IMG/VR virus record: IMGVR_UViG_3300036770_003657
Span: 186,001 to 250,000 of that record
DNA length: 64,000 bases
Direction: 5' to 3' (one strand)
Shown here: one piece after another, positions 3,460 to 61,375 of the stretch
Layout of the letters: the number at the start of each line of letters is the position of its first letter
How positions within the stretch are numbered: position 1 is the first letter of the stretch
Made by a program: the position numbers and the translations under genes
The notes under the pieces: model-generated
What the model was told of the DNA's origin: nothing
The model's input: the letters and a program-made list of their open reading frames with translations, nothing else
The model's database searches: none

Positions 3460-4135
3460 TTATGCAGTTGCTCAAAAGGAGCACGGTAATGATACTTTAT
3501 CTTGGGTTGATATTGTAGCATCACAATATAGAGTTACGAATTTAAGTCAAGCTGGGTCTGGATTATACTATATGTATACTAAATTTATTGAAAATAATCA
3601 AAAATTTGATAAAATTGTTTTTTTAATCACCAACTCAGGCAGACTTTATATAGATGAATGTAAGATTCAACAACATTTTGTAAATTATGAGCAATGTGAA
3701 TATCTTTATAGCATGGCTGAAGACCTTAAAGATAAAAAAATTATAGATGCTATAAAATCTTATTATTCTTATGTGAAACAGGATAGTTTCGATTTATTTG
3801 TGCATGATTTAATAATTGAAAAAATTAAAAGCATTAGGAATGATGTTTTATTCATACCTTGCTATTCAGAAAATTTACAATCTCTATCAAATAAAAATTG
3901 TCTTTTTCAAGCCTGTGTTATAGATTGGGCAGGATATAACATCAATGGAAATGAAGCTCATGCTAATAAACGATATGTAGATAAGCGTCATGGGCACATG
4001 AACGAACCTAATAATCGTATACTAGGTGAAGAAGTATTGAAATATTTAAGATTAGGGTCTTTTAATATAGAAAATTGTAAGTGGATATTTGATGAAAGTA
4101 AACCTTTAGAATTTTATTTTGATAAAAAATATTAA
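3428..4135 (+). CDS. SGNH/GDSL-hydrolase-like protein
   Basis: IGIFGDSY block I, NLSQAGSG block II, C-terminal GHMNEPNN. Confidence 0.6.
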   Translation: MDMNIGIFGDSYAVAQKEHGNDTLSWVDIVASQYRVTNLSQAGSGLYYMYTKFIENNQKFDKIVFLITNSGRLYIDECKIQQHFVNYEQCEYLYSMAEDLKDKKIIDAIKSYYSYVKQDSFDLFVHDLIIEKIKSIRNDVLFIPCYSENLQSLSNKNCLFQACVIDWAGYNINGNEAHANKRYVDKRHGHMNEPNNRILGEEVLKYLRLGSFNIENCKWIFDESKPLEFYFDKKY

Positions 4136-4166
4136 TAGAGTTTTAATGTAAAATAATTGGAATAAT

Positions 4167-7171: not shown

Positions 7172-7450
7172 TTACAATTCTGAATATCCTAATAAAAAGA
7201 AACTTAATTCTTTCTGTTCTTCAAAACCAATCTTAGTTGCGTAGGTAATAGTATTAGTGCTATCTAAAATTAAAGTTTGGCCAATGTAATATCTACCATT
7301 CAAATTTTGATATATCCAATCATCTACACTCATACTACGATTAGGATTGTAGCGATTTCTAGTGGTATAATGAAAATGGCGAGCCGGAAACCGCACTCGC
7401 CGCAAATCCAACAAATTTAAAGGATTTGGCTTGCCATGCTTAAGAGCCAT
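7172..7450 (-). CDS. Hypothetical protein
   Basis: TAATG coupling with the upstream VWA gene. Confidence 0.6.
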   Translation of the reverse strand: MALKHGKPNPLNLLDLRRVRFPARHFHYTTRNRYNPNRSMSVDDWIYQNLNGRYYIGQTLILDSTNTITYATKIGFEEQKELSFFLLGYSEL

Positions 7451-8634
7451 TATGCTTGAGCCTCTTCCTCATAGTAAGCATAAGCACCAAAGGGAGGAAC
7501 AATACTGGTAGTACCGTGTATAATAAACAAGGTATCGCAATAGTTCTCATCACCCCATGATCCAAAAGGATAGCCATCAGTAAACATAATAAACTTTTTA
7601 GGACTATAGTCTGTTTCCTTCATATAGTTCCAGTTAGCCTCAAAGTCAGTACCACCACCACCTTTGAGTTCATAGCCTAAAATGTCATCATTGTATCCAT
7701 CAAAGTCCGCCTCATTGTATACTCTAGTATCAAAACACCATACTTTGATCTTAAAGTCTTTGTACTCATCCATAATGCCTTTGATCTCGCTGAGGAAGTC
7801 TTTAGCCATACTATCGCTAATACTACCACTCATATCAATACCAACAGCAATATCAATAGTCTCATCGTTCTTAAGACCTGGAAGTATAGCACCAGTATGC
7901 CAACCTTTACGATTAGGACGCTGAAAACTGTAGTCATTCTTAATCAAACTTTGAATCTGCTGACGTAGCATTTGACGCCAATTGATCTTGGGCTCAGTAA
8001 GATCCTTAATAAGTCGTGCTACACTGGCGGGAGTATTACCAGCACCCGCAGCATTAGCAGCCTGCATAGTAGCCTCACGAACTTCATCACGAATCTGTTT
8101 AAGTTCTTCTTTAGTGTATTGTGGACGACTACCTTTACCGTCACTATCACCCTCCCAGTCAATATGCTCGTCTAATAACTTACCCAATGCTTCAAGTTCT
8201 TCCTCATCATACTTTTCCATCAGTTCATCATAGACCTGTTCCGCACTCTTACCATAATGAGTCTGATCATGAAAGATTGGAATCTTAGGAGGTTGATCGC
8301 CAATCTTGTCACGAATTAATTGACCGTTTACACAATAGTCTGCGGCAATGTTGTAGATTTTAGGATTGCGACTTTCACGACGACCCATATGATCGAACAC
8401 GTTATGGAGAATCTCATGAGCAACTACGAACTCTACATTCTTAGTAGAGAGTTCTTCAAAAAATTGTCGATTGTAGTATAGAGCACGTCCATCAGTGGCC
8501 GCAGTTTGACACCAATCGCTAGCATCAATGATCTTCAAGCGAGTAGCCATATTGCCAAAAAACGGGTGACGTAATAGTAAGCCAACACGGGCAATAATAA
8601 TCTTGTCTATTACGGGATCTAAACTATGTTGCAT
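7450..8634 (-). CDS. DUF2201-like metallopeptidase + VWA domain protein
   Basis: TAATDG, HExxH (AHEILH), MIDAS DMSGS, GGGGTDF and FTDG. Confidence 0.88.
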   Translation of the reverse strand: MQHSLDPVIDKIIIARVGLLLRHPFFGNMATRLKIIDASDWCQTAATDGRALYYNRQFFEELSTKNVEFVVAHEILHNVFDHMGRRESRNPKIYNIAADYCVNGQLIRDKIGDQPPKIPIFHDQTHYGKSAEQVYDELMEKYDEEELEALGKLLDEHIDWEGDSDGKGSRPQYTKEELKQIRDEVREATMQAANAAGAGNTPASVARLIKDLTEPKINWRQMLRQQIQSLIKNDYSFQRPNRKGWHTGAILPGLKNDETIDIAVGIDMSGSISDSMAKDFLSEIKGIMDEYKDFKIKVWCFDTRVYNEADFDGYNDDILGYELKGGGGTDFEANWNYMKETDYSPKKFIMFTDGYPFGSWGDENYCDTLFIIHGTTSIVPPFGAYAYYEEEAQA

Positions 8635-8656
8635 GATATCTCCTTAACAAAAGCAT

Positions 8657-8685
8657 ATTATAACAGGGGTCTGTGCCCCTGTCAA
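8657..8685 (-). promoter_or_regulatory. Consensus sigma70 early promoter (TTGACA-N17-TATAAT); spacer contains an ACAGGGG/CCCCTGT hairpin
   Basis: tgtcaa at 8680-8685 and attata at 8657-8662 on the + strand, 17-nt spacer. Confidence 0.85.
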
Positions 8686-8686
8686 T

Positions 8687-9778
8687 TTATTTGCGCTCAG
8701 TAGCGGCACTAATATACTTACCAAACTTAGCGTGGAAGTCATCAAAGCATTCAATCTCATCTGGATCTAACGGAAGTTGATATTGGGTAAGAGCAAGTTT
8801 AGTGCTCATAATAACCAATTCAGTCTCAAAGTTCTCCATAATAAAGCCAAAGAAGTTATTGACCTGCTTGTTCCAATTCTTAGCCTTCTTGTCTGCTGAA
8901 TCCTTAAGCTCATAACACAATGAAACTGCCAAACTGTACATAGCACTGATCTCTTTTGACTCCATTTTCTTAACCTTACCGCTAAGGATGTCAGTGGGGT
9001 CAGGCATCTTGCTGGCAACTTTGCGATGTGCCATAAACTTAAGTGCCAAACCTTCACCTACTGCGCCTGAGATAAGGTCAGTTAAGGTGTTCTCATCACA
9101 GTCATCATCCTCAAGTAACTCGCTAACAAAGGTCCAGCTACGTGGAGTAGCAAAAGCACGGCTTGAACTCTTAGGATCAAAGTCATAAAGATCTTTCTTT
9201 GAGAAGGTCAAGTAGCCAACTACATCCTTATGGATACGATTCTCGGTAGCCCAAAAACTGTAGTCTTCCCAATCTACCTTCATCTCCAAGTGTACAAAAC
9301 GATTGGCTAACGGAGCAGGCATACGATAAGTTACACCCTTATCACCCTCACGGTTACCAGCAGCCACCAATACTACATTTTTTGGAAGCACATAAGTACC
9401 TACACGGCGGTTAAGTACCAATTGATAAGCCGCTGCCTGTACAGCAGGAGGAGCACTATTCATTTCATCCATAAAGAGGATGATCTTGTCGTGCTGTGAT
9501 GCCATCTCAGCATCAGGCAATTCTACTGGGGGAGCCCAAACCATTTTGCTGGTGTTGCTGTCAAAGTATGGGATACCTTTAATATCAGTGGGTTCCCAAA
9601 GAGAGAGACGAACATCGATAACGTGAGCACCGATATCTGCTCCAATTTGTTTAACAATGTCTGACTTGCCAATACCTGGAGGACCCCACAAGAACAAGGG
9701 ACGCTGTTTAGCAAAGCCTTTGAGAATAGCTTTTTTGGCGCCACGGGGGCCTACAGTGCGGCTTACAATCTCGGTCAT
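8687..9778 (-). CDS. MoxR-like AAA+ ATPase
   Basis: Walker A GPPGIGKS, Walker B ILFMDE, AAGN, LANRF and TPRSW; adjacent to the VWA gene. Confidence 0.9.
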   Translation of the reverse strand: MTEIVSRTVGPRGAKKAILKGFAKQRPLFLWGPPGIGKSDIVKQIGADIGAHVIDVRLSLWEPTDIKGIPYFDSNTSKMVWAPPVELPDAEMASQHDKIILFMDEMNSAPPAVQAAAYQLVLNRRVGTYVLPKNVVLVAAGNREGDKGVTYRMPAPLANRFVHLEMKVDWEDYSFWATENRIHKDVVGYLTFSKKDLYDFDPKSSSRAFATPRSWTFVSELLEDDDCDENTLTDLISGAVGEGLALKFMAHRKVASKMPDPTDILSGKVKKMESKEISAMYSLAVSLCYELKDSADKKAKNWNKQVNNFFGFIMENFETELVIMSTKLALTQYQLPLDPDEIECFDDFHAKFGKYISAATERK

Positions 9779-28751: not shown

Positions 28752-29744
28752 CTACGATTTTGCTGGTCTTGGTGCTGATTTAGCACCACTATCACCGCCA
28801 GGGTTAGGAATTCCGCCATTACCTCTTAATTTAGTATGTCTCAGAAGTAATTTATCAACATCTGGATTGCGGCCCATATGCTTGCCTAATTTATCTGCTA
28901 ATAAGGCTAATTCTTGTTCTTCTTCTGGGCTTAATCCACCTGCACCTGCTGCGGCAGGATTAGCAGCAATACCACCTGGTTTACCACCTGGTTTACCACC
29001 TGGAGTATTAGTGCTACCATCTGGACGTGCTCCGTAAAGTGCTAGGCCCCCTGCTGCTGCTAGGGCTGCTGCCGACTTAGCAACATTGTTATTAGATGGA
29101 GTTCTGCCTGTTGGAATCTGTTTGATTAGTTCATCAGCACTTGGTTCTACTTTAGATGTTGCGGCACGACCTATATCATCTGCACTTGAAGCTGCTCCTT
29201 TGAGCCCTGCTTGAGCACTGTATCTAGCTAGAAGGTCATCCAAACCTTGTTTTCCTATATTTGTTACTGTTGGAAATACTTCTGCTCCAATAGCTGCCGC
29301 TTTAGGTGCAAATTGTTCATCTATCTGTGCTAGTTTAGTTCTAATTGCCTTAATTTGATCTACACTATTCATATTAAAATCTTCTTTGACATCTTTTTTT
29401 GTCTGGTTATCTTTATACCATTGTTGTATATCTCTACCAACGTTGGCGGCATCTCCCATGCCACCAAGCGTCCAACCTCCAGGACCAGGAATAAGATATC
29501 CTGCTGCGGCTAATGCTGAAATGACTGCACCGGTTCTATCACCTTTTTGAAACCTATCCCAAGCGTTCTTTAGTGCTAGACCACTGCCTAATCCTGGAAC
29601 CATTTTAGCTAATTGTTTTGTTCCTAGTTCTTTACCAACCACTGCCATACCAGCTGCACCTGCACCTGCATCTTTAGCCAAGTCTAATGCCCCGTAGCCA
29701 GTATCATCTTCTACTAAAGAAATATAATTTTTTATGCTTTTCAT
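28752..29744 (-). CDS. Putative capsid-internal/ejection protein with Gly/Ala-rich hydrophobic segments
   Basis: CTS-like start MKSIKNYISLVE; hydrophobic hairpin-like stretches. Confidence 0.5.
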   Translation of the reverse strand: MKSIKNYISLVEDDTGYGALDLAKDAGAGAAGMAVVGKELGTKQLAKMVPGLGSGLALKNAWDRFQKGDRTGAVISALAAAGYLIPGPGGWTLGGMGDAANVGRDIQQWYKDNQTKKDVKEDFNMNSVDQIKAIRTKLAQIDEQFAPKAAAIGAEVFPTVTNIGKQGLDDLLARYSAQAGLKGAASSADDIGRAATSKVEPSADELIKQIPTGRTPSNNNVAKSAAALAAAGGLALYGARPDGSTNTPGGKPGGKPGGIAANPAAAGAGGLSPEEEQELALLADKLGKHMGRNPDVDKLLLRHTKLRGNGGIPNPGGDSGAKSAPRPAKS

Positions 29745-31069
29745 ATTTTAAAGGCCCTAATTCTATCTAATATTATATCATCGGCTAGGCGATCTACTGA
29801 TTCCTTTTGTGCCTGAGCTGGTGCTGCTGGACTTGCTGCTTGACCGTCTTCTGGAAATGGTTTAAATGTGTACGATCTTCCTGTACGTTCCCAATATCCC
29901 ATTTTTCCAGTTCTTCGATCTCTCGCAGCAGGTTCTCCGTTTGGTCCTTTTTGTGGTGCCGTTGCTGGTGCCGCCGGTGCTGCTGGTGCTGCTGGTGCTG
30001 CTGGCGGCATAGTACCTTGCATGACATGTGGACTAGTTGCTGCCCCAGGAGGTGGATTAGCTGCTCCTCCACCACTCATACCTCTGGCAATTTTGTCCAT
30101 AGTGTCACCTGCTTTTACTACATAAGTACCACCACCTGGCATTTTTAATTGTTGACCAGGATATATTTTATTAATATCTTTGATTTGTGGATTTAATTTA
30201 TGTATGGCCTGTGCCCCTGCACTGCCCTTATATCCTTGTGCAGCAGGTTTATTAGTCTGTTGACTCGCAGGTGGATTAGCAGCACCTCCTGCACCTTTTT
30301 CTAATTTATCTAATAGTTCACCAAATCTTTTTACATCGTTAGGATCAATAGTTCCTGGATCTTCCTCACCTTGATTATTAGTTGATCCAGGAACTTCAGC
30401 AGCAGACGGAGGATTAGTAGCAATACCACCTGGTTCTTGCCAATTAGCTAAATCAGTTCCAGGATTACCTGGTTGTATGTCTGGACTGCGTACTGGATGT
30501 GATGTTGCTACAGGAGCATTGCTACCAGCGTATCCATAATTTTCTGGATCTTCACCACCACCTGCGTCTGCATCGTCAGCCCCTATAGTAGTTGGTGGAA
30601 CATATTCACCTGGATTGGCAGCTATACCTTGATGTTCTTGTCCACCACTCATCACAGGTTGTCCATCACTACTTCTAACTATTTGTCCATCGCTACCACG
30701 TAATGGTTCACGTCGAATATTTGGTGGTTGTGTTTCTCCATCTTCATCTACTCCCATATCCTGCATAAGAGCTTTGGCGATACTACCTCTAAATTCTGGC
30801 ATTGGTGTAGTTTGACTTTGTTTAGCTACCATTCTATAGTCAGGGTGTACTTGAGCTAGACTTTTTTCTGCATCAGCAGCAGCTTGACTAAATCCTTGAG
30901 CTCTTAATTTTTTAATATGTGCTAACCAAGCAGCCACTTTAGCAGCAGCAGTGCCACCCACAAATTCATCTACTTGACCATCTAACGCCATTGGACTAGC
31001 ATCTTCTTTTAGAACTTTTTTACTTTCAATAGCATCCATACGTGCTATCATTGATTTCATATCCATCAT
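29741..31069 (-). CDS. LysM-domain, low-complexity putative virion protein
   Basis: LNPQIKDINKIYPGQQLKMP and YVVKAGDTMDKIA LysM motifs. Confidence 0.7.
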   Translation of the reverse strand: MMDMKSMIARMDAIESKKVLKEDASPMALDGQVDEFVGGTAAAKVAAWLAHIKKLRAQGFSQAAADAEKSLAQVHPDYRMVAKQSQTTPMPEFRGSIAKALMQDMGVDEDGETQPPNIRREPLRGSDGQIVRSSDGQPVMSGGQEHQGIAANPGEYVPPTTIGADDADAGGGEDPENYGYAGSNAPVATSHPVRSPDIQPGNPGTDLANWQEPGGIATNPPSAAEVPGSTNNQGEEDPGTIDPNDVKRFGELLDKLEKGAGGAANPPASQQTNKPAAQGYKGSAGAQAIHKLNPQIKDINKIYPGQQLKMPGGGTYVVKAGDTMDKIARGMSGGGAANPPPGAATSPHVMQGTMPPAAPAAPAAPAAPATAPQKGPNGEPAARDRRTGKMGYWERTGRSYTFKPFPEDGQAASPAAPAQAQKESVDRLADDIILDRIRAFKI

Positions 31070-33061
31070 TTAATCCTTGTCTGATCCATCAGCCTTTTTA
31101 TGACTCTTATAGCCTTTGTTTTTCATATGCCAGGCCAATGCCCATGGGTTCTTTTCCTTACCATCTTTAGTTTTACCCTTGGTTAGTTCAGGATGTTTTT
31201 TCATAGCCTTTACCGTGCCCTTAAAACCAGGTGGGCTTACTTCTTTAAGGCCAAAACTCTGTAGTATACCTTCACTAATGCTTTCCATCTTAACACAATT
31301 GTCTACAGTTTTGCCACCTTTCTTTTTAGTGCCCATACGCTTATAGCCTTTCCAGCAGGCTTTACCGTCTACACCTTTTTGTTTTTCTTCCGCCACACCT
31401 TGCTCTTTGATCTTGTCTTGAATCTTTTTGTAGCGATGAAAGTTAGCATCTTTATCAGCATCAGTCTTGCCAAACTTACCAGCGTCCATCTTCTTATCAA
31501 TTTCACGCTTGGCATATCCTGGAACAACCTTGCGTAGAGTCTGTGGCAAGCCTTCCGCCACACCTTGCTCTGGCAAATTAGGTTTACGATGTTTTCCATG
31601 TGCATTTTTAATACTGGCTTTCAGACTGTTTATCTGGTCTCTGGATGGGAGACCTTTTCTATTGCCAGCAAGATTAAGGCTATGTTTGATGCCGCTACGA
31701 CCAATGCCCTGCCCCTTTTTCAATAGATCATCGTTATCGAATTCACTGCCTACACCACCCATCCTGCGCTTTTGACCCGGATCGTTTTCTGGACGCTCAG
31801 GAAAATCGTAGCCGTACCCAATGCTGTCATAATCGTCGCTATCCCCGGGCTCTTGAGTATACAATCTGTCTTTGTATTTAGGATCACGCCATTTGGCCGC
31901 TTCCGCCACACCTTGCTCTTTGATGTTTAGTTGCTTTTTTGTATAGGCCACTGCGTCATCCAATGCGGCCAACCCTTTCTGTTCTGAATTCTTACTTAAT
32001 CCAGTATCATATAGTTCATCACCGTTATAGATACGCACCTGCCAGCCCATTCCTGTATCAACCAAATCGTGTCTAAAGTTGCCCACCTTGACAGATTTTA
32101 CTACATTCTTTCCCAAGCCTTCCGCCACAGCCTTCTTTTCATCCTTTTTCTTCTCAGGCTTAACAGGTTTAGCCACATCCTTATCACTTACTGGATAGTC
32201 TCTTAAATGACGAGTAGTAGCATTAGGTTTTTTCACAGCCTCTCTAAGCATTTGAATAAGTTTTGGTAGTGATTTACCTTTAAAACTAGCAGACGTTAGA
32301 TCTGGATATTTGTCTAACAAACGATTAATAGTCTGTTGTCTCATTTTATTACTAAAGTCTTGATCATTTGGACCGTCTCTATCTATACGATCTGTACGTG
32401 GCATACGACCACTTTGACTAAATTGATCATCTCTATTACGACCAAACCTACTCTCTGCTGCGCCACCTACCAGTTTACCTTTAGGATAACCTGTTGGTCC
32501 TGGACTACGTAATTGTCCAGCCTGTCCAATTTTGTGTTTACCTAAACCAGCAAAAGGTATACTATTTTCATCTAAGTTTTTACCTTTATGTTTTTCTTTA
32601 CCCTGCTTTTGATCTTTCTTTTTGTCTTTATGTTTGCCTGCTCCAGTTTGTGGACGTAATGGACCTTGTCTTGGCTTTTGCGGCACACGAGCATCTTCCA
32701 TCATACGTTGTACAATACTACGAACTTGTTCTGTACTCTCATAAGATTCTTGTGATGGTAAAGGAGCAGGTGGACGTGGTCGTTGTCTTGGACTAATACT
32801 ATCTAGTGCTTTCTTTGTAGCAGGCCCAATTTGATCAGCACCTACATAGTCAGTCATCTCTCTGCCACCAGTTACGGTGACTATTTGATAAGCATCAGGT
32901 ATTTTTTGACTGATTAAGATCATTTTATTACTTTGCTGATCTAGTACGCCAGCCATACCGTTATAACGTATGTTAGCAAAGCCATCACCCAACTGGCCTA
33001 TTATTTGCATATTAGGGATGTCAGCCTGCTCAACTAGTTGGATGAAGTTTTTAATAGTCAT
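31070..33061 (-). CDS. Modular basic putative capsid-internal polyprotein with EQGVAE linkers
   Basis: Repeated (E)QGVAE/AVAE and hydrophobic-X-E motifs separating K/R-rich modules. Confidence 0.6.
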   Translation of the reverse strand: MTIKNFIQLVEQADIPNMQIIGQLGDGFANIRYNGMAGVLDQQSNKMILISQKIPDAYQIVTVTGGREMTDYVGADQIGPATKKALDSISPRQRPRPPAPLPSQESYESTEQVRSIVQRMMEDARVPQKPRQGPLRPQTGAGKHKDKKKDQKQGKEKHKGKNLDENSIPFAGLGKHKIGQAGQLRSPGPTGYPKGKLVGGAAESRFGRNRDDQFSQSGRMPRTDRIDRDGPNDQDFSNKMRQQTINRLLDKYPDLTSASFKGKSLPKLIQMLREAVKKPNATTRHLRDYPVSDKDVAKPVKPEKKKDEKKAVAEGLGKNVVKSVKVGNFRHDLVDTGMGWQVRIYNGDELYDTGLSKNSEQKGLAALDDAVAYTKKQLNIKEQGVAEAAKWRDPKYKDRLYTQEPGDSDDYDSIGYGYDFPERPENDPGQKRRMGGVGSEFDNDDLLKKGQGIGRSGIKHSLNLAGNRKGLPSRDQINSLKASIKNAHGKHRKPNLPEQGVAEGLPQTLRKVVPGYAKREIDKKMDAGKFGKTDADKDANFHRYKKIQDKIKEQGVAEEKQKGVDGKACWKGYKRMGTKKKGGKTVDNCVKMESISEGILQSFGLKEVSPPGFKGTVKAMKKHPELTKGKTKDGKEKNPWALAWHMKNKGYKSHKKADGSDKD
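31387..32129. repeat. Dispersed 20-bp direct repeat CTTCCGCCACACCTTGCTCT (3 exact copies plus 1 partial), in frame
   Basis: Copies at 31387-31406, 31552-31571 and 31900-31919; partial CTTCCGCCACA at 32119-32129; periods 165, 348 and 219 nt. Confidence 0.9.
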
Positions 33062-34272
33062 TATGCTACCGCTTTCTTCTTTTTAGCAATGGCAATAGCA
33101 GCTTGTTGTTTAGCATTTGCTGCTTCTGTTTTCAAACGACCATCTCGCTCAGCACTCTTTAACAGAGCTGCTCGATCTCCATAACTGCCACGCTTAACAT
33201 CCCTAGCAGCATCCTTTTCACCCTTTGTTGGATTCTTTACGTGCTTCAAAGGATTAAATGCTTCTTTCATACTACACTCTTTCATACCGTGTACTGGACA
33301 ACTTTTACCTTTGGCTGTATGATTACACTTGGCTGATTCGCTAACTTTTTTATCCTTCACAGCCTTCTTCATTGGCTCTTTTTTATTGCCATCCTTGTCC
33401 ATATCTAAAAAGTCTGGTTTAGCCTTTTTACCTTCTTCAAATGGCTTACCTGACTTGGCTGCTGCCTTAGCACGACTGCCCCATACTTCATCTTTAGGAC
33501 TTTCTTTCTTGCCATCACCATCATAATCTTTTTTACTTACTTTCTGACCTTCTCTGGTTTTTACATTTTTGCCTGGAGGTGGAGCAGTAGCACCATCTGG
33601 AGGACTTGGAATATTACCAGTTACACCACCTTTAGGATATAGTTTATTAGTGGGCTTTGGTTGTGCCATTGTATTTTCACTAGTTTTCTTACGTATGCTA
33701 TCTACACTGTAGCCTTGACTCTTATGATCACGACCTGCACGATCTCTTACTTCGCTTTCGCTTTCACCTTCATCTGCATCATAGTGTACATTTTTAGATT
33801 TATTGCCATCTTTGTGCATGAGTTTTACGCTGTACTGACTCTTAGTACTAGTATCAACTTTGCCCTTACGCTTGTCCTTAGCAGTAAAGCCAGTAGCCTC
33901 ATCTACCTTTTCATCCTTTTTCTTCATCTTTTCAGCCTGGGCCTTTTTAAGGGCTTTCATTTTGTCCTTGGCTTCCATTAGTTTGTTTCTAAGGATACGT
34001 TTTTCTTCGGTAGTGTACATATCACTCATTTCAAGTTTTTGTCCATATTCATTGAACTTCATCTCATACTCTAAATAGTGATATACGCTAGCCATATAGT
34101 CTGCTGCTTTAGTAATTTTAGCCTGTATCCACCCTTCTAGTTGGGCATTATCATCCATCATTTTAAATAGTTTTAATGCGTATCTAGCAGTTTTATAAAG
34201 GTCAGCCTTGGCCATTTTACCTTCATCTTCATTCTCTGGGGCGGGCAAACTGCCCTGCATAATAGGATCCAT
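33061..34272 (-). CDS. Modular basic putative capsid-internal protein
   Basis: Short modules (DYDGDGKKES, KPDFLDMDKDGNKKEPMKKA, CNH...CPVHG..EC) separated by x-x-E sites; late box at 34293-34300. Confidence 0.55.
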   Translation of the reverse strand: MDPIMQGSLPAPENEDEGKMAKADLYKTARYALKLFKMMDDNAQLEGWIQAKITKAADYMASVYHYLEYEMKFNEYGQKLEMSDMYTTEEKRILRNKLMEAKDKMKALKKAQAEKMKKKDEKVDEATGFTAKDKRKGKVDTSTKSQYSVKLMHKDGNKSKNVHYDADEGESESEVRDRAGRDHKSQGYSVDSIRKKTSENTMAQPKPTNKLYPKGGVTGNIPSPPDGATAPPPGKNVKTREGQKVSKKDYDGDGKKESPKDEVWGSRAKAAAKSGKPFEEGKKAKPDFLDMDKDGNKKEPMKKAVKDKKVSESAKCNHTAKGKSCPVHGMKECSMKEAFNPLKHVKNPTKGEKDAARDVKRGSYGDRAALLKSAERDGRLKTEAANAKQQAAIAIAKKKKAVA

Positions 34273-34295: not shown

Positions 34296-34502
34296 TTATC
34301 GTTTTAACATTGTTCCGCCAAATAAGCTAATATCACTATCTAGTGCATTTTTGGCTGTTCCATTTTTATTTTTTAATGTTTCTACTTTAACTAACTTTGG
34401 TTTTCCGCCTTTATTAGTTATATGTGGGTTGGCTATGGCAACTACATTACCAGCACTGGTGGCTCCTCCGCTTGCTGTTTCATACAGTTCCCTTAGTCTC
34501 AT
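34296..34502 (-). CDS. Small putative capsid-internal protein
   Basis: CTS-like start MRLRELYE. Confidence 0.55.
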   Translation of the reverse strand: MRLRELYETASGGATSAGNVVAIANPHITNKGGKPKLVKVETLKNKNGTAKNALDSDISLFGGTMLKR

Positions 34503-34880
34503 TTATACTCCATATTGATTACGTTTGATTTTTGCTACAGGGCTTACTGTATTTGTGCTTTTCAGTTCTAAGCTACGCATATCACCTTTGTTTAAATCTT
34601 TGTGATTTGCACCTACAGCTTTACTGGCTTTAACAAACATTTCATGTTCTACTTCTGTATAAGGATGTATAGTTTTCTTTTTACCAAACCAACTCTTGGC
34701 ATCTATATCAGGAACACTTTTTCCATCAGTACTGGCCATAGCTTGTCCTAACTTAAAAGCCACGTAGTCGCTATTGGCTCTTTCTGCGTCACTGTAAATG
34801 CTTACACCGCGTGTAGACTCTTTTTGACGTTTAGTCAATTTGCCTTGTTTACGCTCTGCCAGTATTTCTCTAATCTTCAT
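34503..34880 (-). CDS. Putative capsid-internal protein
   Basis: CTS-like start MKIREILAE. Confidence 0.55.
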   Translation of the reverse strand: MKIREILAERKQGKLTKRQKESTRGVSIYSDAERANSDYVAFKLGQAMASTDGKSVPDIDAKSWFGKKKTIHPYTEVEHEMFVKASKAVGANHKDLNKGDMRSLELKSTNTVSPVAKIKRNQYGV

Positions 34881-36238
34881 TGCTTGAACATATCCTTAGA
34901 TCCAAATACTTGGCCAAACTTATCACCTAACATATTCTTTAACTTAGTACGTTGATCCGCTCTAAGTACAATCATACCATTATCAAACTTGTAGCCCATG
35001 TCACGTAATTTGGGCATTAGGTCAGTAGCCAACAATTTGTACCTAAATACATCTGGTTGTGCCACAGCATGACCACCCATTTGGCTATTTGGTTTACCAG
35101 GTATGGGCGCACGACGTCGTTTACCATCTAGACCAACGACAAAATGATCTACACCTTTAGGTTTAGTTTCTGGTTCTACCCCAGCATCTTTACCTTTATA
35201 CAGTTTAAAGCGTTCATCAGCACCACCACCTATAAGGCTTTTTAATTCCTTTAGTTCAGGTCCAAAGTCACTGCGTAGAGCACTTAGAGGGAATACAAGT
35301 TCAGCAGCCTCGCCACCAATAAAGTCCACGTCACGTATAGCATCTTCTAATTCACCAAGAGCACTGCTGGCATCAGTAAATTCAAAGTTCACTCTAAGTG
35401 GACGACCTTTGCCACCCTTCTTATCTCTAATGCCTACATTTTGACTACGCTGTACAACTTCTTCTGGGAATGTAGCAAAGTCACCTATAACCTGTATTAG
35501 ATTAGTTCTTGGGTTTAGTTTGAATATAATGTATAGTGTGCCACTAGGCTGTTCTAATTCATATAGTCTCATTTCTTTAGCCTTCTTTTTTGGTTTAGCA
35601 GCAGCGAATTGTCCCATACGCTCCTTGGCCTTACGCATAAGATCCATAACTTGATCATCATCTATTTCTGGACTCATAGCATCACGCCATACTGCAAATT
35701 GTTCTTGTTCACTCTTAGTGGGATCTGTTAATACTTGACGCATTGGTGTAGCACGTGGGCCTTCTTCACCAGCACTAGGGTCACCTGTTTCTTGACGGGC
35801 TATAACGTCCAAGTTATCAAACTTAAATGGAATATCACCTGCCTTATTAGGTTTACCGTTATATTGTTTAAGATATTGGAATGCCTGTTTTTGATCAGCA
35901 CCAACAACCACTGTGACGTTGTTATAACCTTGTTGATTTAGGTTAGTCAATACTCTAGTTAGATCAGGCAGTTCATCTGTGGCAGTTTGAAATATATGCC
36001 CTTGTTCTGGGAATACCTTTTTGTATATGGCCAATTTTTCTTCAGGTTGTAAAGGATCATCTGGACCATATGTTCTACTCACTACAAAATATGGATCACC
36101 GCCCATCTTGTCAGCATAGGTTATAACACTACTGGCCAACATCATATGACCTTTATGACCCATACCTCTGCCCCAACCTACCACAGCAGTTGATCCTTCT
36201 CCTGTTCTATCTAGTTCAAATAATTGTCTAAGCCTCAT
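34877..36238 (-). CDS. HxGH cytidylyl/nucleotidyltransferase-like protein with extra C-terminal domain
   Basis: GWGRGMGHKGH, DPL..EEK, VVVGADQ and RATPMR; start MRLRQLFE at 36238 is ATGA-coupled. Confidence 0.72.
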   Translation of the reverse strand: MRLRQLFELDRTGEGSTAVVGWGRGMGHKGHMMLASSVITYADKMGGDPYFVVSRTYGPDDPLQPEEKLAIYKKVFPEQGHIFQTATDELPDLTRVLTNLNQQGYNNVTVVVGADQKQAFQYLKQYNGKPNKAGDIPFKFDNLDVIARQETGDPSAGEEGPRATPMRQVLTDPTKSEQEQFAVWRDAMSPEIDDDQVMDLMRKAKERMGQFAAAKPKKKAKEMRLYELEQPSGTLYIIFKLNPRTNLIQVIGDFATFPEEVVQRSQNVGIRDKKGGKGRPLRVNFEFTDASSALGELEDAIRDVDFIGGEAAELVFPLSALRSDFGPELKELKSLIGGGADERFKLYKGKDAGVEPETKPKGVDHFVVGLDGKRRRAPIPGKPNSQMGGHAVAQPDVFRYKLLATDLMPKLRDMGYKFDNGMIVLRADQRTKLKNMLGDKFGQVFGSKDMFKQ

Positions 36239-38115
36239 TCGCCTTTCCTTGGAGCCCAATTAGCTTGGTCAATTGCTTTGACAAATTGTCCAGGTAAATC
36301 ATTTTGAAATGCTACACCAGGATGAGCACTAACATATCCTTCTGGTTTTGTCTGTCTTATACCATTGTGTGTTCCACTGCTTAGGTTTTGAATCATTTCC
36401 AGTTTAGCTCTAGTTAGTAATTCTACAGCAGTTAATACAGCATCCATACCAGCACGATCTTTAAGTATCATATCTGCTTGTTTAGAGCTGGTATTAGCAG
36501 TGACCCAATCAATAAATTTTTGTTTAACTCCTGGAATACGTAGGTTTTGATTATAAAATTTGTACAATACATCACCTGGTTTACTTAGTCCAGGCTTAGG
36601 AGCTAGGAAGTTGTTGATTAGATTGGCATTTTCCTGTATATATGATTGAACACTATCTAAACTATTTTCTGTAAATTGTGGAGTTTGTTCAGTATACGTT
36701 GTACCCTGCACTATGGTATATGGGGTGCTCAAGCTTTCTGGGTCTGGATAACGTCCTTCATCACTGCTGCCCAAACTTTCATAAAACCCTGTAGCAGCCA
36801 CCATAACTTTGGCATTGCGAATCTTACGACCAAGATCACTATTTTTTCCTATATGGAATGTAGTAATATTTGGAGTGAACTCATACTCTTGCGTTTTTGG
36901 ATTAAGTATTGGTTTGGCACTTTGTCCATCTGGTTTAGTACCTGGATAAAATAATAATCCACCTTCTAAGAATCCATCATCTGGACTGGCCTGTTCAAAG
37001 AAGGGCCAAAGGCTGGCTAATTGTTTGGCATATTGACGTCGTTGTGCTATTTGATCAGGATCAGCTTTACCCGTACCCATTAGGAACTTTTGTACTTCTT
37101 CTGCACTGCGGGGTATGGTGCTTATGCCATTTTGTAACTCTGTCTTACCACGTTTAAGATATTCCCAAGCATTTTTAGGAATCATCATAAACTGTCCATC
37201 CTGTTTGCCCCAATATACTACAGGGCTACCATCCCATTTAAGTTCTATATTACCACCTTGTGTGCTCATATAACGAAGTCGTTCTACAGCATGTAGTCCG
37301 CCCTTGGCACCATTAGTAAAAACTAGATCTTCAATATGTTGATATTTGCGACCTATTGTTGGTGCTGCTGCTTCGAAAAACTTCTTCTCAGGTCCTTTTA
37401 ATGGCGCACTTTTCCAACTTTGTCCACTACTAGCCAAGCTATAAATTTTTTCACGTTGCGTTATAGGTAGTGCATTCATTATACTTTCTACACTGCCTAA
37501 ATCCTGACTACTTGCTCTTGGACCCAATAATTTCTGTGCTATCTCATCCATATCAGTTGATATAAGGTTAGCCTTTTTACCTTTATCGTCTCTAGCAAAT
37601 AACCCTTCATCTGGACTCCATAGCATACCTTGACTGCTAGCAAGAGCATTCATAACCATCTGTTTGTGTACACCTTTATAAGGACTATCTTTTGGTATGC
37701 TATGAACATGGTACCTATGTACCTGTTGTGCATTGGGCACAACTTTTATATCTACCTGATGAAAACTGCGTCCGAATGGTAGTTTAACATGGACCTGTGT
37801 ACCACTTTTTTTAGTATCAAGACCTTTACCTTGTAGGAATCGTTCTAACTCTACTCTAACACCTTTTGCATCTTGTTGTTGAAATACTTTAGCAGCTACA
37901 TTAGCATCTGCCATAACATCAAGATCACCACTCATAACACCTGGTGTAGGTGTTGCTCCACTGCCTATACGATATAGTTTAATGCCTGTACCCTGTAGGT
38001 AGCGTTCCAATTCTGTTTCTAACCTAGGTGCAAGACTTTGGTCAAATGGTTCAACATCGTCCCAAATATTGCCACCTTCCTTAAGTGGCCTAGCAAATAG
38101 CTCACGAAGGATCAT
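36235..38115 (-). CDS. Two-domain protein: Pol-beta-type nucleotidyltransferase + ligase-like (KxDG) domain
   Basis: IGSG...SGDLDV...HQVDI in the N-terminal half; HIED, ELKWDGSP and PEGYV in the C-terminal half. Confidence 0.62.
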   Translation of the reverse strand: MILRELFARPLKEGGNIWDDVEPFDQSLAPRLETELERYLQGTGIKLYRIGSGATPTPGVMSGDLDVMADANVAAKVFQQQDAKGVRVELERFLQGKGLDTKKSGTQVHVKLPFGRSFHQVDIKVVPNAQQVHRYHVHSIPKDSPYKGVHKQMVMNALASSQGMLWSPDEGLFARDDKGKKANLISTDMDEIAQKLLGPRASSQDLGSVESIMNALPITQREKIYSLASSGQSWKSAPLKGPEKKFFEAAAPTIGRKYQHIEDLVFTNGAKGGLHAVERLRYMSTQGGNIELKWDGSPVVYWGKQDGQFMMIPKNAWEYLKRGKTELQNGISTIPRSAEEVQKFLMGTGKADPDQIAQRRQYAKQLASLWPFFEQASPDDGFLEGGLLFYPGTKPDGQSAKPILNPKTQEYEFTPNITTFHIGKNSDLGRKIRNAKVMVAATGFYESLGSSDEGRYPDPESLSTPYTIVQGTTYTEQTPQFTENSLDSVQSYIQENANLINNFLAPKPGLSKPGDVLYKFYNQNLRIPGVKQKFIDWVTANTSSKQADMILKDRAGMDAVLTAVELLTRAKLEMIQNLSSGTHNGIRQTKPEGYVSAHPGVAFQNDLPGQFVKAIDQANWAPRKGE

Positions 38116-38579: not shown

Positions 38580-39227
38580 CTATTTTTCGCTGATGACTCG
38601 ATCTATACGCTGTATATTTGAGCCAATAAACATCTGTACCATGCTCAAACTTTTGGCATCTTTAACATAAAAGTAACTGTCACCTACTCTGTAACCACGC
38701 TTTACGTGGCGTTGACAGCGTTCTGGCATACGAATTTTGTCATTATCCCTACACCAATTAAAAAAGCTTTCATTATTATCTATACGATTACTAATGGTCA
38801 CTTTATAGTCATAGTTAATACGTTTGAGATATATTGTATTCTTTTCTAAAACTGGAGTAGTTTCAGAAGGGATACTAATATATTTAATTTGATTTTTAAG
38901 ATTTTTGCTAACTGAATAAAAATCATCGTAGCTATCTGTGTAATAACTTACAAAAGGGCTACTGACCATTACTTTGTATTCGTGGCCAGCAGTCTGAAAA
39001 GTTCTTGCTATTAATAATGATATATCATAATCTGACTTCTCTCCACTCCAAATATAGGGAGGAAATTTATCTACACTTTTCCAATATAATATTTTACTAA
39101 CAATTAATTCCATATCCTTATTCCTAAACATAGGCGCAAATTTAGTTACAAGAACTATTTTGTACCTATATTTGTCTAGGAATAGTTTATTGGTTCTCTT
39201 CGTGGGTAACAATGTTAGGTGATTCAT
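38580..39227 (-). CDS. Hypothetical protein
   Basis: 215-aa ORF downstream of clpA. Confidence 0.55.
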   Translation of the reverse strand: MNHLTLLPTKRTNKLFLDKYRYKIVLVTKFAPMFRNKDMELIVSKILYWKSVDKFPPYIWSGEKSDYDISLLIARTFQTAGHEYKVMVSSPFVSYYTDSYDDFYSVSKNLKNQIKYISIPSETTPVLEKNTIYLKRINYDYKVTISNRIDNNESFFNWCRDNDKIRMPERCQRHVKRGYRVGDSYFYVKDAKSLSMVQMFIGSNIQRIDRVISEK

Positions 39228-41451
39228 TTTCAGTTACTTTACTAGTTCTTACACGTTTTGTCACGGTGATTTGGTCATTTTCCAAACCAATTACTGCCGA
39301 ACCACCATCCTTAAGTTCACCAAACAGCATCATACGGCTTAGGGGACGTTTAATCTCCTTGTCTATAACACGTTGTAGTGGACGGGCACCCATTTTACTA
39401 TCAAACCCCTTTTCAATCAAGTTATTTATAGCAGCATCGTTAATACGTATGCGAATGCCCTTGTCTGATACTTGTCGTTTAAGTTCATCAATAAACTTAA
39501 CAACAACCTTATACATTGTATCTTTATTCAACTTGGTAAATGTGATTATGGCATCCAAACGATTTCTAAACTCAGGAGCAAAGAATTTCTTTAGATCCTT
39601 GTCATCATAGTCTTTTTCCTGCTTACCAAAACCAATTTGATTCTTTTCAGCAGCTTGGGCACCAGCATTAGTAGTAAGGATTAGGATAATGTTTCTACAA
39701 TCTGCTTTCTTACCATTGCTACCAGTTACAAACCCATTGTCCATCATCTGTAATAGTATTGTACTAACATCTGGATGACTCTTTTCTACTTCGTCAAAAA
39801 GTAACACACAGTATGGATTTTCTTGTAATTGAGTGATAAGTAATCCTGCATTTTCCTCAAAGCCAACATATCCTGGAGGAGATCCAATCAACTTGCTCAC
39901 GCTGTGCTTTTCTTGATACTCACTCATATCAAAGCGTATAAGTTTTACACCAAGATGTTTGGCTAATGTTTTAGCTGTTTCTGTTTTACCACAACCAGTT
40001 GGCCCCATAAAAACAAATGATCCAATAGGCTTGTTTTCAGGCTTAAGACCAGCACGAGCGACTAGTATTTTATCTACAAGTTCTGTAACAGCATCATTCT
40101 GCCCAAATACTTCATCATTGATTTGCTTTTCAAGATTAGCCAAGTTATTGCTCTCTGTTTCAGCAATTTGTTCTTCAGGCATTTGAATAGCCTGACTTAG
40201 CTCAAATTGAATTTCGTGTTCACCAATAATACGTTCCTGATCTAATTTAAGATTAAATCTACTACAGGCACAATCAATAAGATCAATTGCTTTATCAGGC
40301 AACTTTTTCTCTGTTTGATACTTTATGCTAAGTTTTACAGCAGCTTGAATAGCATCATCTGTAATTTTAACTTTATGGAACTGCTCGTAGTATTTTTTAA
40401 CACCTTTAAGGATTTGAATAGTTACGTCGTATGTTGGTTCATCCACCGTGATACGTTGGAACCTACGCATTAGAGCACGATCTTTTTCAAAGTACTTGCG
40501 ATATTCCTCCCAAGTTGTACTGGCCACTACTTTGATATTACCCTTGCTTAGAGCAGGTTTCATCATGTTAGCAAGGTCATTAGCACTATTACCTGCACTG
40601 CCTGCTCCGCTGATCATATGAGCTTCATCAATAAACAATATTGTTTTACCCTTGGTCTGTAGGCCTTTGAGCACTAGTTTAAAACGTTCTTCAAAATCTC
40701 CACGATATTTACTACCAGCTAACATGCTGCTAATATCCAAACTATAAACCTTGTAATCCTTTAAAAACTCCGGTACATGACCTTTTTCAATATTAAAAGC
40801 CAGTCCTTCTGCAATAGCAGTTTTACCAACACCTGGATCACCGACAAGCATAACATTATTTTTATTGCGACGTCCCATGGCTAAGGCAATATTTTCCAAT
40901 TCTGTCACTCTGCCTACCACTGGATCAACTTTATTACGTTTGACAAGATCATTCAAATTTGTAGTAAATGCTTTTATGGCACGATCTACTTGATGATCAG
41001 TGACTTCTTCTTCTTCAGTTTGTACTTCACTATTGAGATAATCTGCAAACTTATTCTTATCTACCCCAGCCTGTTGAATATAATAACTGGCATAGCTACG
41101 CTTCTCACTCATAATGCTTAGGAACACGTCACTAAGTTCCATAGTTTGTCGGCCATTAAATAGGGCCTGTGTAAATGCACGATTCAATACACGCTCTACT
41201 GCCTGTGTCTTTTTTGGTTTAGTGGCTTCTTCTTTAATAATATCATCAAGTTTATTCTTTAAGTAGTGCTCTAAATTCTTTTTAATGTATTCTGAATCAG
41301 CGCCATATGTTTGTATAGTATTAACAAAATGCTCTTCACCTAACATTGAGTATAATAAATGTTCTAATGTTAAGTATTCATGTTTATAGTTTTTAGCTAG
41401 TTCGATGGCCTGTTCAAAAACTTTTTTAAGATTGTCGCTGGGCTCTACCAT
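39187..41451 (-). CDS. clpA: ClpA-like Hsp100 ATPase
   Basis: Clp-N HEYLTLEHLL; two AAA modules GDPGVGKT and GPTGCGKT; RFDMSEY, IGF loop and GARPL. Confidence 0.92.
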   Translation of the reverse strand: MVEPSDNLKKVFEQAIELAKNYKHEYLTLEHLLYSMLGEEHFVNTIQTYGADSEYIKKNLEHYLKNKLDDIIKEEATKPKKTQAVERVLNRAFTQALFNGRQTMELSDVFLSIMSEKRSYASYYIQQAGVDKNKFADYLNSEVQTEEEEVTDHQVDRAIKAFTTNLNDLVKRNKVDPVVGRVTELENIALAMGRRNKNNVMLVGDPGVGKTAIAEGLAFNIEKGHVPEFLKDYKVYSLDISSMLAGSKYRGDFEERFKLVLKGLQTKGKTILFIDEAHMISGAGSAGNSANDLANMMKPALSKGNIKVVASTTWEEYRKYFEKDRALMRRFQRITVDEPTYDVTIQILKGVKKYYEQFHKVKITDDAIQAAVKLSIKYQTEKKLPDKAIDLIDCACSRFNLKLDQERIIGEHEIQFELSQAIQMPEEQIAETESNNLANLEKQINDEVFGQNDAVTELVDKILVARAGLKPENKPIGSFVFMGPTGCGKTETAKTLAKHLGVKLIRFDMSEYQEKHSVSKLIGSPPGYVGFEENAGLLITQLQENPYCVLLFDEVEKSHPDVSTILLQMMDNGFVTGSNGKKADCRNIILILTTNAGAQAAEKNQIGFGKQEKDYDDKDLKKFFAPEFRNRLDAIITFTKLNKDTMYKVVVKFIDELKRQVSDKGIRIRINDAAINNLIEKGFDSKMGARPLQRVIDKEIKRPLSRMMLFGELKDGGSAVIGLENDQITVTKRVRTSKVTENESPNIVTHEENQ

Positions 41452-41953
41452 ATTTTTTCCTTATTTTGTCGAATTTTTTCATAGCCATACTTTGCTTGAG
41501 TTTACTTACACGATCTGTAAAACAGATACCATCTAAGTGATCTAGTTCATGTAAAAAACATTTAGCATCTATGTCATGTAGTGATATTACACAATTATTG
41601 CCATCGCTGTCAAGATACTCGGCAACAACAATTTTTGGTCTTTTAACTGGAATAAGCATTTTAGGAAAGCTCAAACATCCTTCAATTGACTCCAATAATT
41701 GATCACTTGCTGCCTGTAGCCTTGGGTTAAACATGGCAAATGGTCCTGTTTCTAAACTAATGTCTCTAGGAAAGATAGTAATTACTCTAGCTCTAAGCCC
41801 AACTTGATTTCCACTAAGACCTATACCTCTTTCTTTAACCATTAGTTCTATCATTTCTTTTTCAATTTGTTTTGGATCCATTATGGGATTCTCAAAATCA
41901 AAATCAGGCATTTGTTCTCTTAGTATGTCATTTGGAAAGGTTATTAAGTTCAT
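41426..41953 (-). CDS. def: Peptide deformylase
   Basis: GIGLSGNQ, EGCLS and HELDHLDG. Confidence 0.92.
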   Translation of the reverse strand: MNLITFPNDILREQMPDFDFENPIMDPKQIEKEMIELMVKERGIGLSGNQVGLRARVITIFPRDISLETGPFAMFNPRLQAASDQLLESIEGCLSFPKMLIPVKRPKIVVAEYLDSDGNNCVISLHDIDAKCFLHELDHLDGICFTDRVSKLKQSMAMKKFDKIRKKYGRAQRQS

Positions 41954-42770
41954 TTTTTATATCCAATAATTTTTTCTTTATCTTTTCATCGTGTATTGTA
42001 GGAATTTTAATATAAATTATAATTACAAAATCTCCTTGTTGTCCAGTAGTAATATTTGTGAATCCTAGTCCTTTAGATGAATATTCGCCACCGTGTGTCA
42101 TTCCTGGACGTACTTTGATATTTAATAATCTACCATCTATTGTTTCCACTGGTTTATTACATCCTATCATAGCTTCAATAGCATCAATTTCTATGATAGT
42201 AGTTATGTCGTTATTTCTTCTAGTAAAATTTAAATCCTCTGCTACCAAGATACTAACATTTAAATCCCCACGAGCCAATTGAGGATATGTGTCATCACCC
42301 ATACCTTTAAATTTTAGTATATGTCCACTTTCAATTCCAGGTGGTATATTAATTACCACTGTTTCTTTACGTCCAGAAGGTAAAGCATAACTAGCTTCAA
42401 TTTCCTTGCCAATAAAACTATCAAGTAGAGTAATCTTACACTTGATATTAAGATCTAAATTTTTATTTCTTACATGTCTACGACCAAAATCAAACCCTGC
42501 CCGTCCTCTAAACATATCATTAAATACGTCGTGTATATCTTCAAAACTTCTAAAGTTTCCATTAAAGTTTTGTTTAACATTGATTTCACTGTCGTATCTA
42601 TTACGTTTATTTGGGTCACCTAACGTATCGTAGGCTTGACTAATTTTTTGGAAGTGGCTTTCATCACCACCTCTATCTGGGTGATGCTCCATAGCCAATT
42701 TACGATAGGCTGTTTTTATATCTTGTGCTGTTGCTTCTCGGCTAACGCCTAATATGTCGTAGTAGTTCAT
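41928..42770 (-). CDS. dnaJ: DnaJ/CbpA-type co-chaperone (no Zn finger)
   Basis: J-domain YYDILGV...HHPDRGGD plus DnaJ C-terminal domain. Confidence 0.9.
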   Translation of the reverse strand: MNYYDILGVSREATAQDIKTAYRKLAMEHHPDRGGDESHFQKISQAYDTLGDPNKRNRYDSEINVKQNFNGNFRSFEDIHDVFNDMFRGRAGFDFGRRHVRNKNLDLNIKCKITLLDSFIGKEIEASYALPSGRKETVVINIPPGIESGHILKFKGMGDDTYPQLARGDLNVSILVAEDLNFTRRNNDITTIIEIDAIEAMIGCNKPVETIDGRLLNIKVRPGMTHGGEYSSKGLGFTNITTGQQGDFVIIIYIKIPTIHDEKIKKKLLDIKNELNNLSK

Positions 42771-61373: not shown

Positions 61374-61375
61374 TT

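Follow-up and report, generated by a model that had tools for sequence, protein, structure and literature searches.

A short in-frame joint as recombination site and probable protease-cut linker between interchangeable cassettes of a hypervariable phage gene

Gene P0001 is an open reading frame (ORF) of 663 codons in a 64,000-nucleotide stretch of DNA, hereafter the window, that covers positions 186,001–250,000 of the 399,796-bp viral contig IMGVR_UViG_3300036770_003657 (Ga0310126_0000016; 36% GC). The protein consists, in order, of a short leader, an N-terminal domain (N-domain), cassettes of 73, 116 and 55 amino acids and a C-terminal module of 105 amino acids, and a recurring sequence of about 21 nt, which we call the joint, lies between the parts that follow the leader. 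We read this joint as probably being two things at once, an in-frame recombination site in the DNA and a protease-cut linker in the protein, set between interchangeable cassettes of a hypervariable gene.

An earlier note on this DNA had described three exact copies of a 20-mer and a partial fourth, and this description holds. The 20-mer CTTCCGCCACACCTTGCTCT occurs exactly three times (Table 1), with none expected from 100 dinucleotide-preserving shuffles, while the fourth copy matches it at 16 of 20 positions. The copies are spaced by 165, 348 and 219 nt, each divisible by three as the note had also stated, and every copy lies in the one ORF on the minus strand; the motif appears in none of the remaining ORFs of the window. 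The 20-mer is the core of the joint GAG CAA GGT GTG GCG GAA GGC, which encodes E-Q-G-V-A-E-G. The segments between the joints share no homology with each other, so that this is not an internally duplicated or tandem-repeat protein, and none of the cassettes has its own start or stop codon. The claim that some of them are richer in GC than their flanks is also borne out, with a GC content at third codon positions of 0.37–0.52 over the cassette array compared with 0.13–0.25 in the N-domain and a genome median of 0.23, a difference that would fit import from a common pool.

The mosaic character of the gene is evident from its relatives. A protein search returned 333 homologues, most of which cover just 12–48% of the query at 60–95% identity, and which carry between 0 and 7 copies of the motif xQGVAE(G/A/E). 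When these proteins were compared all against all by BLASTP, internal alignment starts clustered 4–5 residues upstream of the motif Glu and ends clustered 0–3 residues downstream; alignment ends fell within 12 residues of the motif in 27–39% of cases, against 11% at random positions. Cutting the proteins at the motif gives modules of fixed length (116, 73, 55, 50 and 48 amino acids) that recur next to differing neighbours, and the 73-aa cassette is 77–88% identical across 42 proteins in which its flanks are unrelated (alignment A3).

At the nucleotide level the gene was compared with three syntenic loci, L201, L202 and L203, whose gene order follows that of the window from ClpB past a DUF6267 gene, a 403/360-aa gene and the carrier gene as far as the DNA polymerase. 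Their cassette sets are N-60-53-73-61-269-105, N-74-105 and N with an unrelated 330-aa insert, respectively (N, N-domain; numbers, amino acids). DNA homology with L203 (about 91–94.7%, through residue 314 of the N-domain) stops at 32119, in the degenerate joint. Homology with L202 stops at 32121 and restarts at 31404, and homology with L201 stops at 31900 and restarts at 31405, in each case at joint copies; one breakpoint, at 31291 against L203, falls outside the joints. Nucleotide matches to the 73-aa cassette in six other, unrelated loci all stop at a joint, and those to the 55-aa cassette span it from one joint to the next, with 90–93% identity in L049, L051 and L072. The clearest case is a close relative, L120. 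Its backbone, with the DNA polymerase region counted in, has 81.6% identity to the window and its C-terminal module 89.9%, while the block 31387–31571 (joint, 55-aa cassette, joint) is 99.5% identical and the end of the 73-aa cassette 100%; L120 is without the 116-aa cassette, and one joint is shared by its 73-aa and 55-aa cassettes. Logan contigs from four aquatic or subsurface metagenomes show the same behaviour, matching as far as a joint and then diverging through branches and skips, with loose ends at 31899/31900, both loose ends and joined forms at joint copy 2, and one contig that fuses the N-domain directly to the 55-aa cassette. As the Logan assembly k-mer (k=31) is longer than the 21-nt joint, this branching is not repeat collapse. 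Circular forms, with a cassette joined back on itself, did not appear among these contigs, which by their nature would not reveal them. The core of the 116-aa cassette (31611–31812) had no contig at 95% identity or above in four metagenome runs, among them X1, which contains 82% of the stretch and may have been the sample of origin.

The earlier note had supposed that cassettes could be swapped in frame between phages, and had named two outcomes that would refute this, orthologues with the same modules in the same order and synonymous linker sites that vary freely across genomes. Neither was observed. Orthologues have different cassettes in different orders, their breakpoints lie at the repeat, and the synonymous linker sites do not vary freely, so that in-frame exchange through recombination at the joint is very likely. 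These comparisons show the joint as a short patch of identity at which cassettes are added, removed and swapped while the frame is left intact. The general homologous recombination of the phage is the likeliest mechanism of exchange, given that some breakpoints lie outside joints and that no linked recombinase, attC-like structure or separate ORFs were found; among the 25 commonest families of 149 neighbouring genes, a heterogeneous set classified with PHROG, no recombinase is consistently linked to the joint.

The joint is widespread, and the search of other phages that the earlier note had called for returned the exact 20-mer in at least 120 IMG/VR contigs of 4–400 kb, with all 133 listed copies in one frame. 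These contigs come from uncultured, mostly freshwater phages. Over 481 unique contexts the third positions of the joint are 90–96% fixed, the conserved block is 21 nt long and its flanks are at background. A codon-degenerate scan for E-Q-G-V-A-E-G found the core CAAGGTGTGGCGGAAGG identical in 45 of 84 sites, from 80 loci unique to that scan, and most of the other sites one base off it, where free synonymous choice predicts 1/256. In homologous pairs with 30–60% amino-acid identity, codon identity at identical residues is 0.47–0.53 in module bodies and rises to 0.80–0.94 at joints, in every identity bin. The two codons singled out as atypical are indeed so, as elsewhere in joint-carrying ORFs GTG makes up 20% of the Val codons and GCG 10% of the Ala codons. 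The identity of the joints is not due to shared ancestry, because the 170 unique joint-bounded segments (200 loci) fall into about 147 unrelated module families; frequent exchange together with gene conversion would instead hold the joints identical. The joint is essentially viral, being present in 8 of 185,579 species genomes, mostly as chance matches in GC-rich metagenome-assembled genomes that give no clue to the host. Class II tRNA-Leu resembles the joint in its 5' part, a likeness that we take to be coincidental.

At the protein level the joint peptide reads as a probably exposed linker in which hydrophobic-x-Glu precedes a small residue. Where the 116-aa cassette begins, all of 52 sequences have Glu at P1 and Ala, Ser or Gly at P1', 46 have Val, Met or Leu at P3, and P2 is any of nine different residues. 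This pattern survives the decay of QGVA, as in LDE↓S, MKE↓A and LGE↓A (the arrow marks the boundary). Taken over seven modules, hydrophobic-x-Glu lies within six residues upstream in 64 of 69 distinct module contexts compared with a background of 15%, and these 64 include degenerate sites as well as N-terminal leaders placed ahead of the same module. One module is found after a canonical joint (QGVAE↓EKQRLDPKCW), after a degenerate internal site (HMME↓IKQRLDAKCW) and after a leader (MKINEILTE↓AVRQRLDPECW). The prohead protease gp21 of T4 cuts after Glu, following the rule L/I-X-E, and was first seen to act at a Glu-Ala bond (PMC9026906, PMC5694885). The pattern, together with the predicted disorder of the linkers, the leaders and the cyanophage virion homologues described below, lends indirect support to the earlier suggestion of a V-A-E cleavage linker and makes it fairly probable that the joint is a proteolytic site.

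The leader resembles the capsid targeting sequence (CTS) of T4 internal proteins, which comprises about the first 10 residues, with residues 8 and 10 setting processing (PMC9026906). A Glu is present at residue 8–12 in five of the seven genes of the carrier block. In the T4-like cyanophage S-SCSM1, mass spectrometry of virions detected a nicotinamide mononucleotide adenylyltransferase (NMNAT; leader MKSFLQFLKE) together with the neighbouring products of ORF89, 90, 92 and 93 (PMC9602691), and the NMNAT-like gene of the window is a homologue of this virion NMNAT (BLASTP 28.5% identity, E 2.5e-14). By analogy with these proteins we lean, if narrowly, towards packaging of the carrier protein in the virion.

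The leader would then bring the whole protein into the prohead, where a gp21-type protease would cleave after each Glu, a residue whose replacement by Asp blocks processing in T4. Cutting at the joints is predicted to yield products of 33.7, 7.9, 12.9, 6.3 and 11.6 kDa, four of the five basic (pI 9.1–10.0), which would remain with the DNA and go into the host. The timing proposed in the earlier note, with peptides released on injection, has to be abandoned, since T4-type phages cut in the prohead, during maturation (PMC9026906). The anti-defence role that it had raised for the cassettes is a candidate that we hold to be less likely than not.

A number of observations weigh against this reading. 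The P3 position of the boundaries is dominated by Val and Met and not by the canonical Leu or Ile of T4, so that the cleavage part of the reading extends the T4 rule. The enrichment of CTS-like N-termini in the family is modest, at 46 of 87 proteins (53%), where internal windows reach 26% and the other genes of the window 31% (p=0.02 for the latter comparison). The loci retrieved with the exact 20-mer are skewed towards the consensus, for which the degenerate scan is a partial control. Recombination by itself is a weak reason for selection to conserve the nucleotides so strictly, and the joint may have some other function at the nucleic-acid level. No cultured phage provides a model, since a tblastn search with the whole 663-aa protein found no match in 50,697 phage records; the cassettes are in no cultured phage. 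The gene neighbourhoods of the carrier contigs are heterogeneous, and these phages may not all encode a Glu-specific protease. Finally, neither a gp21-type protease nor capsid genes were located in the window and about 10 kb past each end, flanks that hold baseplate and radical-SAM genes and not head genes. A gp21-type protease would be expected from the lineage, as the DNA polymerase is nearest to those of Atu_ph07 and Phosso, and a gp21 orthologue is present in group 2 jumbo phages along with UvsX/Y/W (PMC7824862).

A separate observation concerns proteases in the window itself. At 7450–9778 a MoxR-type AAA+ ATPase (363 aa) adjoins a 394-aa protein with DUF2201_N (a putative metallopeptidase) and DUF2201 (vWA-like) domains, which PHROG labels 'HNH endonuclease'; the pair offers a second candidate for the processing protease.

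The alternative that survives best, although we think it unlikely, is that the joint is a recombination linker only. The joints would be kept identical by recombination and gene conversion, the peptide would be a tolerated flexible linker, and the protein would work uncut, like beads on a string, whether packaged or not. All of the evidence at the DNA level fits this equally well, as does the disorder predicted for the linkers, and the glycine-rich motifs (GRMs) of gp38 adhesins are known in-frame recombination linkers that are not cut (PMC3157838). What it leaves unexplained is that sites with a decayed DNA joint still keep Glu at P1, a hydrophobic residue at P3 and a small one at P1', that P2 varies freely, and that the same modules occur behind N-terminal leaders that end in hydrophobic-x-Glu.

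Nucleotide conservation far stricter than the peptide needs could also point to a dedicated enzyme that reads the 21-mer and moves the cassettes, be it a site-specific recombinase, an endonuclease of the homing type or another nucleic-acid-guided system; the array would then be an integron in the strict sense. Endonuclease families do recur in the neighbourhoods, each with 4 of the 149 genes. This is nevertheless improbable, as neither the window nor the 149 neighbouring genes yielded an integrase or a consistently linked gene, the joint is non-palindromic and has no conserved flank, and some breakpoints, such as that at 31291 against L203, are outside joints. A non-exhaustive scan of window genes and of the 25 commonest neighbouring families found no tyrosine recombinase of the IntI type. 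With no integrase, attC-like structure or separate ORFs found, the term 'integron-like' used in the earlier note is valid as an analogy only. The promoter early stem-loop (PeSL) cassettes of T4-type phages provide a precedent for exchange that works without a dedicated enzyme (PMC2839356).

More improbable still is a signal at the level of RNA or translation, in which a ribosome pause at the rare GTG GCG or a Shine-Dalgarno-like AAGGUG would aid module-by-module folding. In its favour, AGGUG is complementary to the anti-Shine-Dalgarno sequence, and the rare codons GTG and GCG are fixed in otherwise AT-rich genes. However, fixation is no less strict at the common codons CAA, GGT and GAA, where a rare-codon pause would not call for it, there is no conserved flanking structure, and breakpoints at the joints and transfers from joint to joint would go unexplained. 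An artefact or ordinary origin, by chimeric assembly over the repeat or plain internal tandem duplication, is negligible in spite of the repeat collapse that can affect metagenome assemblies, since the joint at 21 nt is below assembly k-mer length, the architecture is repeated in independent JGI, ENA and Logan assemblies, and the cassettes are mutually unrelated.

The dual-function joint that we favour appears to combine elements that are already known, namely the CTS-bearing internal proteins of T4, shuffling at conserved linkers (PeSL and the gp38 GRMs) and polyvalent proteins. The T4 internal proteins IPI, IPII, IPIII and Alt are small, mostly basic, and carry a CTS processed by gp21 (PMC3012670, PMC9026906). 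Like them, the protein described here has a short N-terminal leader ending in hydrophobic-x-Glu and small, mostly basic predicted products, and like them it belongs to a highly diverse family that has only the targeting and processing motif in common; the T4 protease cuts after Glu. The T4 proteins are separate genes with their own leaders, whereas the cassettes here are fused in one ORF with a repeated internal site that is nucleotide-conserved across many phages. In phiKZ, 201phi2-1 and SPN3US a gp21-related protease cuts inner-body and ejection proteins at multiple X-x-Glu sites (PMC5694885, PMC9026906), which is a further likeness, but there the motif is S/A/G-x-E, the propeptides are long, no cassette exchange or nucleotide-conserved sites are reported, and the phages belong to group 1 rather than group 2.

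On the side of recombination, PeSL cassettes place short conserved sequences around variable ORFs and have indel or replacement breakpoints inside the element, need no dedicated recombinase, and have been likened to integrons by their own authors (PMC2839356). They are intergenic promoter-terminator units that move whole genes, while the joint is intragenic, in frame, about 21 nt long, peptide-coding and without a stem-loop. The gp38 GRMs and the His boxes of T-even tail fibres are closer in being in-frame conserved motifs between hypervariable segments that serve as crossover points for swapping (PMC3157838), but the GRMs form the structural core of one domain with variable loops in fixed order, in contrast to the unrelated domains or disordered modules, variable in number and order, that are connected here by a disordered linker. 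The polyvalent proteins of phages and conjugative elements (Iyer et al. 2017) similarly place many unrelated modules on one polypeptide; they have recognisable enzymatic effector domains and often their own peptidase, whereas the proteins described here contain almost no known domain, no embedded peptidase and a uniform joint. Integron arrays share the exchangeable cassettes bounded by a recurrent sequence and the large shared pool, and differ in having an IntI integrase, attC hairpins, separate ORFs and a Pc promoter, where the present cassettes are in-frame parts of one protein. We found no earlier description in the literature of the motif or of phage polyproteins made of packaged proteins.

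A broader form of this reading, which is possible but which we hold with less than even confidence, is that the joint is a community-wide 21-nt adaptor among otherwise unrelated freshwater phages, combining in-frame capture from a common pool with leader-driven packaging and proteolytic release in the capsid, as a protein-level analogue of the integron for injected effectors; mini-circles or an unrecognised enzyme that reads the 21-mer might serve such a system. If our reading is true in full, it would explain a fast renewal of the set of proteins that phages inject, as a new module would require just the joint and could do without a promoter, a start codon or a targeting peptide. The 21-mer would then be a handle for searching metagenomes that delimits hundreds of candidate injected modules (the families and loci counted above), and it is among small proteins of this kind that anti-defence functions are usually looked for. 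Nature would also provide here an unusually clear example of a single short sequence that serves DNA and protein alike. To engineers the joint suggests itself as a natural adaptor, in frame, through which T4-type capsids could be loaded with cargo proteins.

Table 1. Parts of the carrier gene and neighbouring features, in window coordinates
Feature	Position	Strand	Remarks
NMNAT/cytidylyltransferase-like gene	34877..36259	minus	PHROG match; likely start MRLRQLFE...
Upstream neighbour, 403 aa, basic	33061..34272	minus	KPDFLDxDKDGNKKEPMKKA module common with S-SCSM1 ORF92 (annotated 'virion protein')
Carrier gene P0001, 663 aa	31070..33061	minus	From ORF list; leader, N-domain, 3 cassettes, C-terminal module; 333 partial homologues with mosaic coverage
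CTS-like leader, aa 1–11	33029..33061	minus	MTIKNFIQLVE, ends hydrophobic-x-Glu
N-domain, aa 12–315	32117..33028	minus	33.7 kDa, pI 9.97; kept in syntenic orthologues, partly mosaic itself
Degenerate joint	32119..32138	minus	KAVAEG; 16/20 match to 20-mer, first 11 nt (32119–32129) exact
73-aa cassette, aa 316–387	31901..32116	minus	Four strands and one helix
Joint copy 3	31900..31919	minus	KEQGVAEA; exact 20-mer
116-aa cassette, aa 388–503	31553..31900	minus	Alignment A4
Joint copy 2	31552..31571	minus	PEQGVAEG; exact 20-mer
55-aa cassette, aa 504–558	31388..31552	minus	
Joint copy 1	31387..31406	minus	KEQGVAEE; exact 20-mer
C-terminal module, aa 559–663 (105 aa)	31070..31387	minus	11.6 kDa, pI 9.9; Cys motif CWKGYKRMGTKKKGGKTVDNCV; 90–93% in orthologues
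Two downstream low-complexity genes	28752..31069	minus	442 aa with LysM; 330 aa with leader MKSIKNYISLVE

The individual parts of the carrier protein gave few matches to known families. Neither the 663-aa protein nor any of its parts, searched separately, matched a Pfam family, and the mosaic family as a whole is nearly devoid of Pfam domains, with a few members that have NMNAT-like or GNAT parts; the ESM Atlas returned a low-confidence model and matches to viral hypothetical clusters only. The AlphaFold2 (AF2) model of the 73-aa cassette has a core with pLDDT of about 90 and joints below 50 at both ends. Its fold resembles free-standing, uncharacterised phage proteins of 60–75 amino acids (best E 5e-4, target TM-score up to 0.86), while Foldseek found nothing in the PDB at E≤0.001, which leaves a resemblance to MmoD or AcrF1 as a lead only. 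The 116-aa cassette is mostly disordered (AF2 pLDDT 56) and contains conserved short motifs. An alignment of mosaic-family fragments (A1) was misaligned and not used for folding.

Many proteins of the family (P0033–P0079) have recurring C-terminal motifs, ...ARIKSLALLK/R, ...RRMMEIAGISR and ...AYATAWKAKNKAKK, which suggests that the terminal modules are conserved and play a separate role. A 68-aa ORF at 34296–34502 starts MRLRELYE↓TASGGATSAGNV, and its motif ...Y-x-LE↓(S/T)ATSGATS... forms the N-terminal part of the larger family proteins P0020, P0055, P0060 and P0100.

The source of the window is, from its gene content, apparently a T4-related freshwater jumbo phage of group 2. The nearest relatives of its family-B DNA polymerase are those of Sinorhizobium phage Phosso (51%), Agrobacterium phage Atu_ph07 (47%) and E. 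coli jumbo phages of about 350 kb (43%). Other genes of the window encode ClpB, DnaJ, peptide deformylase and the MoxR/vWA-metallopeptidase pair; DnaJ co-chaperones and the MoxR/vWA pair are listed in a review as typical for T4-related group 2.2 jumbo phages (PMC7824862). The carrier gene belongs to a block of four genes (403, 663, 442 and 330 aa), basic or of low complexity, downstream of the NMNAT/cytidylyltransferase-like gene and the DUF6267 gene, and at orthologous loci both low-complexity genes downstream of it are swapped for genes of different length.

A blastn search against phage records found only two module patches of about 100 nt, both in cyanophages. The Cys motif CWKGYKxxGxKxKGGKxVDNCV (31289–31393) has 75–81% nucleotide identity to genes of T4-like cyanophages. 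The KPDFLDxDKDGNKKEPMKKA module (33350–33438) and the Cys-motif module are 75–85% nucleotide-identical to marine T4-like cyanophages (S-SCSM1, S-PM2, P-TIM68 and others), and the sequence around both is unrelated to the cyanophage counterparts. A 33-nt stretch encoding (K/E)PGGIA(A/T)NP is repeated in the two genes downstream of the carrier (28950–28982 and 30404–30436), with weaker copies, GGAANP, in the 442-aa gene; as GGIA(A/T)NP was found in no other locus or protein match, it is local to this phage.

Elsewhere, at least seven radical-SAM genes follow one another over window positions 1–5372 and L215:452–8613 (contig 177–191 kb), accompanied by an Asp/Arg hydroxylase gene and one resembling a methyltransferase; the part of this run within the window has the lowest GC content of the window (0.25–0.33). 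A chaperone cluster at 39187–42770 encodes a ClpB-like double AAA+ ATPase, the peptide deformylase and DnaJ. Two adjoining tail-fibre-like ORFs (618 and 187 aa) at 59517–61939 contain Mtd_N, the domain with which the tropism determinant of Bordetella phage begins, and a gp9/10-like protein of 2379 aa lies just past the window end (L214:2557–9696).

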